A stretch of 63,878 nt of DNA, the filler included, from Perkinsus chesapeaki ATCC PRA-425 (lineage: Eukaryota; Protista; Perkinsozoa): assembly GCA_013115145.1 (NCBI GenBank). It is 8 parts of 8 records of this genome, joined end to end, with 100 filler letters (N's around TTAATTAATTAA, not from the genome) between each part and the next. Parts side by side here need not be neighbours in the genome. Positions count along the whole stretch, not along the records: positions 41,579 to 45,239 come from JAAPAO010001371.1; 7 more parts are not named here. The stretch is one strand, 5' to 3'. The translations under genes and the position numbers were made by a program. Each line of letters opens with the position of its first letter. Position 1 is the first letter of the stretch. Under the pieces are notes generated by a model. That model saw only the letters and a list, made by a program, of their open reading frames with translations, was not told the DNA's origin and did not search any database. Shown here piece after piece: positions 41,247-56,438 of the stretch.

Positions 41247-42116
41247 ATACCATTTCGTTTAGTCTGCCATGCAGCAGTAAAAGACTTAAAGGCTGAAGAA
41301 CATACTGTGAAGACATAAAGACAGTGACGCCAAGGGCTCCAGATCGAAAGCTCTCTGTCCCTCAACCTGTCTCTAGGGCGCATATTCGTCTATTCCCATC
41401 TACTGTATTGCTGCTCCATCAGCCAGGTACATAGAGACAGTCACCATAATGTACACGCGTGCAGCTTATTCCCTTGGGNNNNNNNNNNNNNNNNNNNNNN
41501 NNNNNNNNNNNNNNNNNNNNNNTTAATTAATTAANNNNNNNNNNNNNNNNNNNNNNNNNNNNNNNNNNNNNNNNNNNNTAATAATATTAGTTAGATATAT
41601 TTTTTATATATTTCGCTGTCACCACATCACCGGCCAATAACCGTGTATGTAATTTACACAGTGCCGGATTCACACTGACCGTCAACTTGGCACCCAAGGG
41701 CGGTGACACAAGTTATCCTTTGTGTCACAGTGCACAACTTCCCTAGTCTTCCCATACCGAATCTTCGGCGTTCGTGTCAACTTCGCAGAATGACTATGTT
41801 GTGCGGATGAAGGAAGATTGTCCAAAATATGGCTGGGTTGTCAATGGATTGTGAGAAGTTGTGAAGATAGAGGCGCAGCAAACACTAGCGAGGCCTAGGA
41901 CGCGAAGGCCCAGACTCAGGAGTCGGGATAAGTAGCAGGATATGGTGCAACAAGAGAGGATATTGGTGGCTTAAAATGTGCGCAAAATGCGACTCAATGA
42001 TAGCAATCGTGTGCGGCCCCGGTGAAAAACCAAGTGCACGTGAATTCTAGGCAGCTGCGCACTCGCACTGCAGAGTATGCGCGCGTCAAGTGAGCGCCAA
42101 GCGAACGCTCCGGTAA

Positions 42117-42167
42117 TTTCGTGGCGCGCAAGAATTTAATGCTACCCGCACACTATCAACGTCGACC
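42117..42167 (+). promoter_or_regulatory. Upstream elements of SL RNA gene 1
   Basis: TTTCG..GCGCGC, AGAATTTAATGCTAC (-47..-33) and TCAACGTCGACC (-22..-11) recur at the same offsets upstream of SL gene 2. Confidence 0.75.
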
Positions 42168-42177
42168 CCTATAGGTT

Positions 42178-42260
42178 ACCGTAGCCATCTTGGCTCAAGG
42201 TAAATATCCGGTCCACTCGCTAGGCTGCAGCCTAAAGGTGAATGCCAGTGACGACCCTTT
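42178..42260 (+). ncRNA. Spliced-leader RNA gene 1 (canonical 22-nt Perkinsus-type exon)
   Basis: ACCGTAGCCATCTTGGCTCAAG immediately followed by GTAAAT donor, TAGGC-TGCA-GCCTA hairpin and TTTTT about 80 nt from the start. Confidence 0.92.
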
Positions 42261-42296
42261 TTATACTTTTAAGTTGCTATTACTTGAAGTCAGCAT

Positions 42297-42377
42297 TTCC
42301 CCGTTCCCCTGGCCAATGTTGAACTGAAGGCTTCGTTTCACGAATGCAAGCACAACATTGACCAGGGGACCGGGGAA
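42297..42377. other. 81-nt hairpin (25-bp arms, 2 mismatches)
   Basis: TTCCCCGTTCCCCTGGCCAATGTTG (42297-42321) pairs with CAACATTGACCAGGGGACCGGGGAA (42353-42377). Confidence 0.85.
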
Positions 42378-42435
42378 TCTGAATATAATGCACACGCATA
42401 TCACTGTCATACGGTATAATCTAACTGAAATAAAC

Positions 42436-42494
42436 TGCATCATCCGAGAATCGAACTCGGGTCACAACGATGGCAACGTTGTATTCTACCACTG
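42436..42494 (-). tRNA. tRNA-Gly(GCC), 5'-truncated (first ~12 nt missing)
   Basis: CAGTGGTAGAAT-A-CAACG-TTGCCAT-CGTTG-TGAC-CCGAG-TTCGATT-CTCGG-ATGATGC-A; the expected 5' GCATCAT is replaced by unrelated sequence. Confidence 0.88.
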
Positions 42495-44712
42495 TGTATT
42501 GAGCGTTAATGTCTGCATTGTAGTTATCATTCATTTGCATACCACACTGGTGCATCATCCGATATGGCCGAGAATCTTCCTCAACCCCAAGCTGCTGCCC
42601 TTGACCAAGCTTCTATCGCCGCCCTGGCTGATGTTATCCGTACGATGGTGGTTGAAGCGAAGGTCACGATCGACCCTACCAGACCCCTCCAATGCGTGAT
42701 GGCCCTCCAGAATGAGGTTAATGAGGCTATCAATAAGTTACAGGCAGCGACCAATGTGGCCACGGCCAAGAATGAAGTTGGAGGACGCCTCCAGGATCTG
42801 AAGAGTTCCCTGAACAAGTTTAAGGATGCTTGGGAGACCCTTTCATTGACCGAACACCAGAACGCTACTATCTCTGAGGAAGCCTCCTATTCCGGTATCC
42901 CTCCAGCTGAGAGGATGCAACTTCGCATGCTCTCCAAGATGGACACCCTGGTTAATAAGATGACAAGACCCCCGGTGAATCGTTTCAACAACTCTCCCTC
43001 CGGTGTTGGAATGAGGTGTTACAACTGTAACCAGCTGGGCCACCAGGCCAAAGATTGTCCTAAGAAGACTACGCTTCTAACTGAAGGTGCCGTGCTGATA
43101 GTGATGAGGCAGCAATCAGCCGGCAGGAAGAAGCTAAGCCTCCTGATAAGTTAGATATATTGTTTTTGAAATTAGATAAGTTATCCCAAGATATCAGGGA
43201 TCTGAAGACTTCGAAGGGCGCTGAGCCCGAGCCCGATTCTGATGCGGCATCAACTGCAGCGTCTGATGAGGAAACCCCCAACAGCCCTAGGGAAGTGGCG
43301 CCCCCTGGGGACCGTGTCACTTTTGACTGTGATAATTATAATCTACGTTGGGATGATAGTCGAAGTATGTATGTTGTGAAGCTTAAGCAGGGCCCTCCGA
43401 GAGGGAAGGTCCCGCCTAGTGATGGGAGAAGGCAGAGCTACTGCCGTGATGATCAGTTGGTGACTCTTGAAGAAGCCCAGGCCGACATGGTGGAGTACGA
43501 CGCCAACGAAGAGATATCTGAGGAACAACTGATAGAAGAATGCTATCCATTAAGGATGTTTGTACCCCCCGAAGAAGGTCGCCGAGTGAGAGGAGTGTTA
43601 AACCTGATACAATTTAATGAACATTGTGGACAAGGCTCCCAAGCAGAAGCGAATATTAAGGACTTTAAGTCCTGGACTTATTTGAGAAACTAAGAGTGAC
43701 CAATACTGATAACGTGGTGCAGGCAGATTTATCACGAGCATTCTACTCGGTAGCTATAGAAGCTGAAGATGGTATAGCTGTACCATCTTCATACCATCTT
43801 CATCTTCATGTTGTAAGATGGTGAGACTGCCTATGGGCTGGAGATTCAGTATGAAGGTATTGTCCTTATGTGTAGAAGATATCCTGGGAAGATATTCTGA
43901 AGGACAACATCCCCGTTAAGGGAGTGACAAGAGTCGTGCATGCTAATAATATCGTGTATTCATCTGTGAAGGAGAAGAGTGGTATGGTACTTCAGCAGGT
44001 CGAGGACGATGAGAAGATTCTAAACGCTAGAGCCTTCAGATGGAAGCCAGGGAGCGTGGAGCGACTGAGAGACAATCCCGGTGACGCCATGAATGTGCTG
44101 GGTTATACTCTGTCCCGTTCAGATGACTCGTCCATCGTAATCGGCGTGAAGTATCGCACGCTGCCAGAGATATGGAGCCGAAGATCATTGTTACAATGGG
44201 CAGCTAAATGCTACGACGAGCTAGGCATCTCTGGAGCCGGAGCTATCAAGTCTAAGCTATCCAGCTTCGCGATGGCCGGTATACCCACTAAAGCAAGAAG
44301 AAAGTACATGGACGTCCCCTTATCGGTCGCTGAACGCCGAACAGTATGCCCATGGTTGGATGATCTTGTCAAGAAGTCTGGTAAACTAATCTCTTGGGCA
44401 CCCCGCACAGCGTGCGGGCGTGTACGTGCGTACACTGATGCAAGCGGCTCTGGCTGGGGCGTGAAGATCGTACAAGAAGGCCTAGCTCATCCTCTAGGAC
44501 GCTGGAGTGGACGATGGACGCAGAAGACGTATCACCTTGGGATGCCGGCGAAGGAGGCCCTTGGTATCATCAAAGGAGTGAGATACTGCCCATGGAAGGA
44601 AGCCGACATCTATTCTGACTCCAGCACGTGGGGTTTTGACGTGCTGCTGCTGGGGATAAAGATAATAGTAAGGGTAATAGCTGTATATCAGTGGGCACAT
44701 TATGCGAATTAA
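42493..44712 (+). mobile_element. Degenerate gag-RT-RNase H retroelement with tRNA-Gly PBS (5' part)
   Basis: TG..CA segment 42493-42546, PBS 42548-42562, gag 42564-43154 with CYNCNQLGHQAKDC, RT motifs VRGVLNLIQFN, ADLSRAFYSV (43723), RLPMGW (43824), dead HANNIV, VLGYTL, RNase H YTDASGSGWG/KEALG/YSDS; frameshifted; no integrase or 3' end found. Confidence 0.82.
42548..42562 (+). promoter_or_regulatory. Primer-binding site complementary to the tRNA-Gly 3' end
   Basis: TGGTGCATCATCCGA is the exact complement of TCGGATGATGCA+CCA of the adjacent tRNA-Gly; begins 1 nt after ...ACCACA. Confidence 0.85.
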
Positions 44713-47288
44713 TTAGATAATGAGGATACGATGAGTTGCTACAGTGGATTAGTGAAGTGAATTAATCCGAAACCCTTTAATTACGATAAGTGAATTAGTT
44801 CCTGCAGCTCTGCGGCGGAACATAGTTGATTATGGAAGACAGAAACCCGTCTCCGGAGGTTTGGAAGCAGTTTCTGCAGTCTGAGAGAGATTTTTTCGAT
44901 TTGAATGAACTTTCTCACAACATAACGTATGAGTAATATGCAAAGTTCATGGCTCTTCCAGGGAAGTGGATAGGTTTCATCGAGGTCAGGGCGACGGCTG
45001 AATATTCGAAGAACCGAATTGTGGTCCGGTCAGATGGCTCAATACTTAAAAACGGTGCCAGATATCGCTCGATAGAGTAATAAACTTGCCAAATGCCACG
45101 AAAAATCATCCAGGAGTCCTCGGATGTGAATTTTCTTTTGTTAAAGAAATGTTGAACTTGTTCATGAATCGAAGATAACTCGTTATCGGATGTTAAATAT
45201 CCCTGGAGTGACCAGGGCTTGCTATTCAAGTGGCTGTGANNNNNNNNNNNNNNNNNNNNNNNNNNNNNNNNNNNNNNNNNNNNTTAATTAATTAANNNNN
45301 NNNNNNNNNNNNNNNNNNNNNNNNNNNNNNNNNNNNNNNAGAGAAGGTCACTTGACGCTCACTGTGCATTTTACCTAGCTGAACACTCTCAGGCGAGAGT
45401 CTTCAACTCACAAAATAAGTCACCACGTCCGATTCATACTCAGTATAGAGTTTGCAGAGTCCGTACTTTTAACATGAAGCTTGAGTGTATACATTCAATC
45501 TTAACATTTATAATCTATATATTCGATAGTATCACACTTGAGTACGAGTTTGGCGAGCTTAGGACTAACAGTTGTGGTGTCGAACTCGTGTAGCATATTG
45601 AGTTCCTTGCGTGCGACATAGTAAACTGTTTGCCATGGTGTGACAGTCACGAGCCATCTCAAGTGTCATCTCTTTTTGCCCTGGAAAGTAGTACATACTA
45701 TCAGTGGAAGTTTACTCTCCAGCGGGAACTATTGTAACTAATCATAAAGCGGGTGTTAATGTATTTTGTGCATAATCTTGAGTTTGATCATTCTCAAGCT
45801 GACTGCATACCTGCCAATCGGAGGAAGCTGATTCCATTCCGGAACCCGCACCAACCCCATTGTCAGCTATCGTTCTGTTACTACACCCGTCTTTACATTT
45901 GTTACGCTTTCTGACGGTTAAGGTTCGACACTCCCACTCTCGCAATCGTTCGCATGGTTTGAGTATTCAATCGCCGTAGTCGTTCACGTTTGAGGCCAAG
46001 CCTGGCAGCCACTCTAGCCCACTCGATAAACGCAAACCTTTCCTCTACACAGAACACCAAAGCCGGTAATAATGGTAAGTCGATATCGATGAACATAAAC
46101 ATGATCACTTATTCATGATTCGCTGGAAGCTCGGAATATCCGGCTGGGACACACTCTTGCTTAGCAGCCTGAAAGGCTGTTTACGAAGCCACGCCATGAA
46201 TGCCCTACCTTGCCGACCTGTCACTCGAGGAAAAGCTCCTGTGAGACCTGCTGCCAACTGTAGACCTCGATCGGCGAGAACTAGGCGGGAGGCCCTTTGG
46301 CTCCCTTTCGGTGGGCGGCGGTCGACTCTCAAATGCTGAAAAGAATCTTTTGCACCTTACAAGCTCGGCTCGCTGCACTACGACTAGCAGACTTCTCAGT
46401 GAGATAGAAGCATTGCTTTCCTGCTGGACTCGTGTGGAGCTTGCCCAGTATAAGCCATGGCTTGGCGAGGAAGTCAACCTGACGACGAGCAATCATGATA
46501 GATGTTAAACGGTATTCGGTTACTGATGTGGTGTTAAGGCCTTCGTAAGTTGGTCTTTCCACGCGAGTGTTGAGAGGGTGGTAGTAGTGCTGCCACTGCT
46601 CACGGCCGATGCACTCTCTCCAGTATTGATCCTAAGATGGATGACAGATATCTTAGCGAAGCATTCTTCTTGGATTAATAGGGGTTAGAAATGGATCGTT
46701 TTTAGGCTTCACCGCTCAGAGCTTTTGGAGTCCGCTTTTATGCGACACAAAGTGTATCACCCACCGGGAGCTATCAAAGACAAAGCATAGTGTTTTAAAA
46801 CATAAAGTGGTAGATAACGTGCACTAGTTTAATCCGACCTGCGTCCAAGGGACTGCTTCAATAAGAAAGTTAGAGTGTCCACAGCGAGCCATGGTTTGGA
46901 AAGGGCGCTACTGACACAATACTGAGCAAATAAATATCAGACTACATAGAGGGACTGGTCAAGAGAGCCATTACGGAGTACTTGGTACTCTACAGCTCAA
47001 TGCTATTCCAAAATCGGCTAGAGGTGTCAGAATCTTCAGAGGGACATACTTCATTCTCGAGAGAGCGCAGGTTGATATTCTATAATCTTTAAGGTATTGA
47101 AGTTCGTGATAATAAAGCAAATCAATCGAAACGTAGTTCTGGAACTTCCCAACTGAGCACCATTTTCGTCAGGGAAATAATACCTATTTTTGGGCGCGCG
47201 CCAAACAAGCTGCGCTCCTCTTTCATTTAATTACGGTGGAAATCATTTTTCTTTGTAACTATGGGACTGTCTTTTGTCAGTGTTATTA

Positions 47289-56387: not shown

Positions 56388-56438
56388 GGTCGATGTTGAA
56401 GCGCGCTCAGTAGCATTAAATTCTCGCGCGCACCGAAA
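56388..56438 (-). promoter_or_regulatory. Upstream elements of SL RNA gene 2
   Basis: TTTTCGGTGCGCGC, AGAATTTAATGCTAC (56424-56410), TCAACATCGACC (56399-56388). Confidence 0.75.

Follow-up and report, generated by a model that had tools for sequence, protein, structure and literature searches.

To our knowledge, every spliced leader (SL) RNA promoter mapped so far, in trypanosomatids and nematodes, is built of short blocks within ~70 nt of +1, and in every studied system we know of SL RNA is made by RNA polymerase (Pol) II. The PSE of small nuclear RNA genes, usually found near -55 with a TATA element near -30, is defined by its being shared among the U1, U2, U4, U5 (and U6) genes of one species, together with SNAPc binding. 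The trypanosomatid SL promoter comprises a bipartite element at about -60/-30 and an initiator, is served by tSNAPc, TRF4 and TFIIA, and directs transcription by Pol II with termination in a T-tract (cited in part in PMC2699521).

In perkinsids and dinoflagellates, every nuclear mRNA, or almost every one, is thought to be SL RNA-dependent. The 22-nt L-type Perkinsus spliced leader, PmaSL1, has been printed in PMC3101222 and PMC9399869, and 3' RACE of P. marinus SL RNA placed 83% of mapped ends on the first three T of the tract, giving RNAs of 80-83 nt; in the fold published for them, two stem-loops form, the donor GU is base-paired and a loop holds AUCUUGG (Zhang et al. 2011, PMC3101222). An SL RNA band of >72 nt was reported in both Perkinsus species, and L-type SL RNA was detected in P. 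chesapeaki with an exon probe that is not locus-specific, while P. marinus intron probes gave no signal on P. chesapeaki RNA (Zhang et al. 2011, PMC3101222). Upstream sequences of P. marinus L-type genes were described as uniform and those of S-type genes as diverse, only some of the latter resembling the L type (Zhang et al. 2011, PMC3101222); the S-type diversity argues against any one upstream motif being shared throughout the genus. In the literature searched, outside which lie Hearne and Pitula 2011 and Zhang et al. 2007 and 2009, we found no SL RNA or snRNA promoter from Perkinsus or a dinoflagellate, in agreement with an earlier note on this DNA, whose author knew of no described Perkinsus SL promoter.

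Here, we report the analysis of one L-type SL RNA gene of Perkinsus chesapeaki and of the sequence blocks directly upstream of it. From the one gene read, we consider the chance that the blocks at -61..-11 are, wholly or partly, the upstream promoter of a functional gene to be a little short of even. Once mapped, a 60-nt promoter of this kind would show what drives the most heavily transcribed small RNA gene of perkinsids and dinoflagellates, would allow comparison with the independently evolved SL systems of trypanosomes and nematodes, and would provide those who study Perkinsus with a cassette for expressing small RNAs in routine genetics.

A complete L-type SL RNA gene in P. chesapeaki

The window, i.e. 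the whole stretch of DNA analysed, is 63,878 nt long including filler, and its positions 41579-45239 are the entire 3,661-nt contig JAAPAO010001371.1 of the P. chesapeaki assembly GCA_013115145.1. This contig carries a complete L-type SL RNA gene on the plus strand. Box positions are counted from the first base of the SL exon, the A at 42178, as +1, and the features of the gene and its upstream region are as follows:

42117-42129 (-61..-49), plus strand: distal GC-rich box TTTCGTGGCGCGC, located by reading and script, with a putative function
42131-42145 (-47..-33), plus strand: box 1, AGAATTTAATGCTAC, with the A/T-rich core AATTTAAT, located by reading and script
42156-42167 (-22..-11), plus strand: box 2, TCAACGTCGACC, with the overlapping palindromes ACGT and GTCGAC, located by reading and script
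42169-42175 (-9..-3), plus strand: CTATAGG, just 5' of the presumed start T(-1)A(+1), listed for its position only
42178-42199, plus strand: SL exon ACCGTAGCCATCTTGGCTCAAG, 22 nt, Perkinsus L-type, identical to the published PmaSL1
42200-42262, plus strand: SL intron, from the GT donor to the T5 run (42258-42262), with a predicted RNA of 81-83 nt

The presence of an SL RNA gene, as called in the earlier note, is borne out by the identity of the exon, by a GT splice donor at 42200 directly 3' of the 22-nt exon ACCGTAGCCATCTTGGCTCAAG, by the T run, which a script places from RNA nt 81 onwards, and by a predicted two-stem-loop fold. This minimum free energy structure (-33.9 kcal/mol at 27 C) is predicted to pair the donor GU and to expose the Sm-like AUCUUGG in a loop. 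The gene thus shares with P. marinus PmaSLRNA-L an identical 22-nt exon, a GT donor, two predicted stem-loops and a T tract at nt 81-83 (PMC3101222). The two introns begin alike: that of P. chesapeaki starts with GTAAATATCCGGTCCACTCGCTA, and the pattern GTA.ATATC.GGTCC.CTCGCTA is common to both, whereas comparison with the P. marinus L-type primer sequences shows three substitutions in the first 23 bases. The P. chesapeaki intron agrees at 17/20 positions with the sequence that the P. marinus L-type intron probe targets, in keeping with the report that this probe gave no signal on P. chesapeaki RNA.

Rfam holds no family matching the SL RNA gene, and an Rfam scan of the contig returned no U snRNA gene. 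Exact look-up of ten open reading frames of the contig gave no record, and a 50-aa peptide translated through the SL RNA gene, when used in a word search, yielded no candidate for reading frames called over other SL loci. Judged by every sequence-level criterion, the gene belongs to the Perkinsus L-type family, and the copy at 42178 is regarded as intact.

Sequence blocks upstream of the SL exon

The coordinates that the earlier note gave for box 1, box 2 and the GC-rich box upstream of this gene are all exact. Each of the three boxes has one exact copy in the 3,661-nt contig, in which neither box 1 nor the GC-rich box has a second match at <=3 mismatches; box 2, TCAACGTCGACC, has five other matches, all with 3 mismatches and thus at chance level. 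The comparison loci (six metagenome contigs, L001-L006, among them L006 = Ga0209712_10041088, and the P. marinus contig GG684761.1, L007) contain no match to any box with <2 mismatches, and none to box 1 at <=3. In the literature searched, the box sequences matched only unrelated primers. The presumed start is a pyrimidine-purine step, T-1/A+1.

Where SL RNA and snRNA promoters have been mapped, they fall in the region spanned by the blocks at -61..-11, and a gene of the SL RNA kind must have a promoter close by. Read by eye, the SL gene contains no tRNA-type B box and no B-box-like GTTCNANNC; as it has no internal B-box promoter, it needs an upstream one. Two to three short upstream blocks within ~70 nt of a small, capped, T-tract-ended SL RNA gene are reminiscent of trypanosomatid SL genes, although the P. 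chesapeaki boxes, known from sequence alone, have no sequence similarity to the trypanosomatid promoter and lie at other positions. The arrangement also recalls the SNAPc-dependent PSE/USE of metazoans and plants, i.e. an element outside a small nuclear RNA gene, placed upstream at a constant distance from its +1, but box 1 is centred near -40 and the usual PSE near -55. At best, therefore, the boxes can be likened to an snRNA/SL RNA upstream promoter; membership of the PSE/SNAPc class cannot be claimed from one gene.

Much of the interest in these boxes stems from a second SL gene in the window, for which the earlier note reported diverged spacers and introns next to unchanged, equally spaced boxes; gene 1 alone was read in the present analysis. 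The gap between box 1 and box 2 is 10 nt in gene 1 and equals the gap implied by the coordinates given for gene 2 (56388-56424). The earlier note gave 15/15 identity for box 1 and 11/12 for box 2. If the 15/15 identity at equal distance from the exon is right, it is far beyond chance (~4^-15 per placement), and a block of this kind at a fixed offset would imply common descent of the two upstream regions, without thereby showing selection.

Common descent is also what would be expected if the shared boxes are remains of a recent duplication of, or gene conversion between, the two SL copies, the boxes being stretches that have not yet mutated, or the margins of a conversion tract that extended outward from the exon. 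We regard this as the main alternative, with a probability well below even. Between only two sequences, identical runs of 12-15 bases are expected if overall identity is high, and the fragmented state of the assembly, as suggested by a contig of 3,661 nt, makes it plausible that copies or alleles sit on separate short contigs. The uniform upstream sequences of P. marinus L-type genes are as expected of a young or homogenised family (PMC3101222); the same published statement is compatible with a conserved L-type upstream element. The reported pattern of diverged spacers and introns beside unchanged, equally spaced boxes speaks against recent duplication or conversion. Moreover, the SL intron is itself constrained, so that age alone could hardly account for upstream blocks that had changed less than the intron.

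An upstream promoter of the snRNA/SL type appears to us the likeliest reading of the boxes, held with slightly less than even confidence. It is favoured by the completeness of the gene and its match to experimentally characterised P. marinus SL RNAs, by the uniqueness of the boxes in the contig, by the uniform upstream regions of P. marinus L-type genes and the L-like upstream regions of some S-type genes (PMC3101222), and by the block-wise identity and equal spacing that the earlier note described in the second copy, gene 1 being the copy read here. Reported Perkinsus RNA sizes fit a start at +1, in which case the boxes would be untranscribed upstream DNA. Against the promoter reading stand the positions of the boxes, -47..-33 and -22..-11, which are off the usual places of PSE (~-55) and TATA (~-30), the described diversity of P. 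marinus S-type upstream regions (PMC3101222), and the lack of boxes at an SL-like gene with the same exon on metagenome contig L006, described below. With two copies, one of them verified here, the boxes constitute a reasonable lead.

Under the promoter reading, sequence-specific factors would bind box 1 and/or box 2, candidates being a SNAPc-like complex and perhaps TBP on the A/T-rich core of box 1. The bound factors would then place the polymerase such that transcription runs from the exon A, 42178, to nt 81-83 within the T5 run. It is conceivable, if rather unlikely, that the three boxes represent the first SL RNA promoter defined in Dinozoa (perkinsids plus dinoflagellates), common to the U snRNA genes of Perkinsus and read by a divergent SNAPc-like complex; the parasite would then have a compact (~60 nt) small-RNA promoter.

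SL genes beside tRNA genes and the choice of polymerase

Downstream of the SL gene lie two further features:

42290-42385, no strand assigned: long imperfect palindrome/hairpin of ~90 nt, ~30 nt 3' of the SL T run and before the tRNA-like gene
42436-42504, minus strand: tRNA-Gly(GCC)-like gene, found by ARAGORN; Rfam tRNA score 28.0 bits against a gathering score of 29

The palindrome is seen by self-BLAST at 42297-42377, and its DNA fold of -27.7 kcal/mol (z -6.9) was equalled by 0/200 shuffles; it may represent a small inverted-repeat element, or serve to block transcription. In the tRNA-Gly(GCC)-like gene, probably a pseudogene, three acceptor-stem pairs and two D-stem pairs are non-standard. 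The 3' half of this gene is intact, and the primer-binding site of the neighbouring retroelement matches it.

Other SL loci were sought by a pattern scan with both exon types followed by GGT at the exon-intron junction. Six metagenome contigs matched, while the same pattern had 0 matches in bacterial and archaeal genome contigs and 0 in viral contigs. Five of the six metagenome matches start with T and run into unrelated sequence, and are thus SL relics of retroposed genes. The remaining one, on marine metagenome contig L006, is an SL-like gene at 1361-1418 with a Perkinsus L-type 22-nt exon starting with A. It resembles the P. chesapeaki gene in its GT donor, T5 terminator and tRNA gene neighbours, and differs from it in a much shorter intron and a dinoflagellate-sized RNA of ~54-57 nt. 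Upstream of this SL-like gene none of the three boxes was found, only GCGCGCAA at -25..-18, a different distance from the exon. The tRNA genes of L006 lie at 77-150, 628-699 and 1650-1723, the SL-like gene being embedded in this same-strand cluster, and the contig provides a second, independent case of an SL gene beside tRNA genes.

Such neighbours raise the question of whether the boxes belong to an upstream-type (U6-like) Pol III promoter, in which T5 would be the terminator and the role of a TATA-like element would fall to either the A/T core of box 1 or CTATAGG at -9. Consistent with Pol III, the P. chesapeaki gene ends in a T5 run and adjoins a tRNA-like gene, the SL-like gene on L006, which shares the exon and the T5 end, lies amid three clustered tRNA genes, and in dinoflagellates SL genes frequently occur in linkage with 5S rRNA genes (PMC3101222). 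Linkage to Pol III genes is, however, no evidence of transcription by Pol III, and a T tract also terminates the Pol II-made SL RNA of kinetoplastids (cited in PMC3101222). Of the features of Pol III type 3 genes, the T5 terminator is present and there is no B box, but the A/T-rich stretches are found at -45..-38 and -8..-5, away from -30, where there is none. Furthermore, the SL must carry a cap that is passed on to mRNAs. Taken with these points, we consider a Pol III promoter improbable. Because the SL donates the mRNA cap, Pol II would be the most likely enzyme for the proposed SL promoter.

A degraded retroelement downstream

Beyond the tRNA-like gene, the contig contains the remains of a mobile element:

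42548-44712, plus strand: degraded short retroelement with primer-binding site, gag, frameshifted RT and RNase H-like part
42548-42562, plus strand: primer-binding site TGGTGCATCATCCGA, 15 nt, 43 nt beyond the 5' end of the tRNA-like gene
42564-43154, plus strand: gag ORF with a CCHC knuckle (Pfam zf-CCHC, 3.8e-08)
43924-44712, plus strand: RNase H-like part (Pfam RT_RNaseH, 1.5e-03, a weak match)

The primer-binding site consists of a 12-nt repeat plus TGG and is exactly complementary to the 3' end of the tRNA-Gly(GCC)-like gene plus CCA. A protein of the retroelement is annotated as FOL47_001537. Within the RNase H-like ORF, an Rfam match to TCL6_1, a human lncRNA region (43968-44080, plus strand; 28 bits against a gathering score of 60, without structure), was dismissed as a chance match.

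The only relative of the retroelement found is in P. marinus, at 538-2329 of contig L007 (GG684761.1), with a gag 65% identical and an identical primer-binding site. No LTRs are visible in either the P. chesapeaki or the P. marinus copy. The P. marinus contig, reached through the retroelement proteins, has no SL gene and no boxes. Beyond it, these proteins led back to JAAPAO010001371.1 itself and to no other Perkinsus contig. Homology between the two copies begins only at 42518, after the tRNA-like gene; the SL gene is therefore not part of the retroelement, and that possibility was ruled out.

These observations bear on the idea that conservation of the boxes has to do with something besides initiation, whether they lie in a 5' extension that is transcribed and subsequently trimmed off, as proposed for Fugacium, or belong to an abutting repeated element. 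The contig is rich in mobile-element remains, and SL transcripts of Fugacium kawagutii have been reported with sequence upstream of the SL (PMC6616646). The retroelement, however, begins ~330 nt 3' of the SL exon, after the tRNA-like gene; the P. marinus relative of the element lacks both SL gene and boxes. As for a 5' extension, the size of Perkinsus SL RNA is as expected for a start at +1 (PMC3101222), and the transcribed upstream sequences of Fugacium showed no conservation (PMC6616646). We therefore hold a non-initiation role to be very improbable, more so than transcription by Pol III.

In P. marinus, positions 1-537 and 2330-2772 of contig L007 consist of tandem ~268-nt units, each with a tRNA-Asp(GTC) gene, and the array is interrupted by the 3'-truncated retroelement. 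This retroelement family may land beside tRNA genes.
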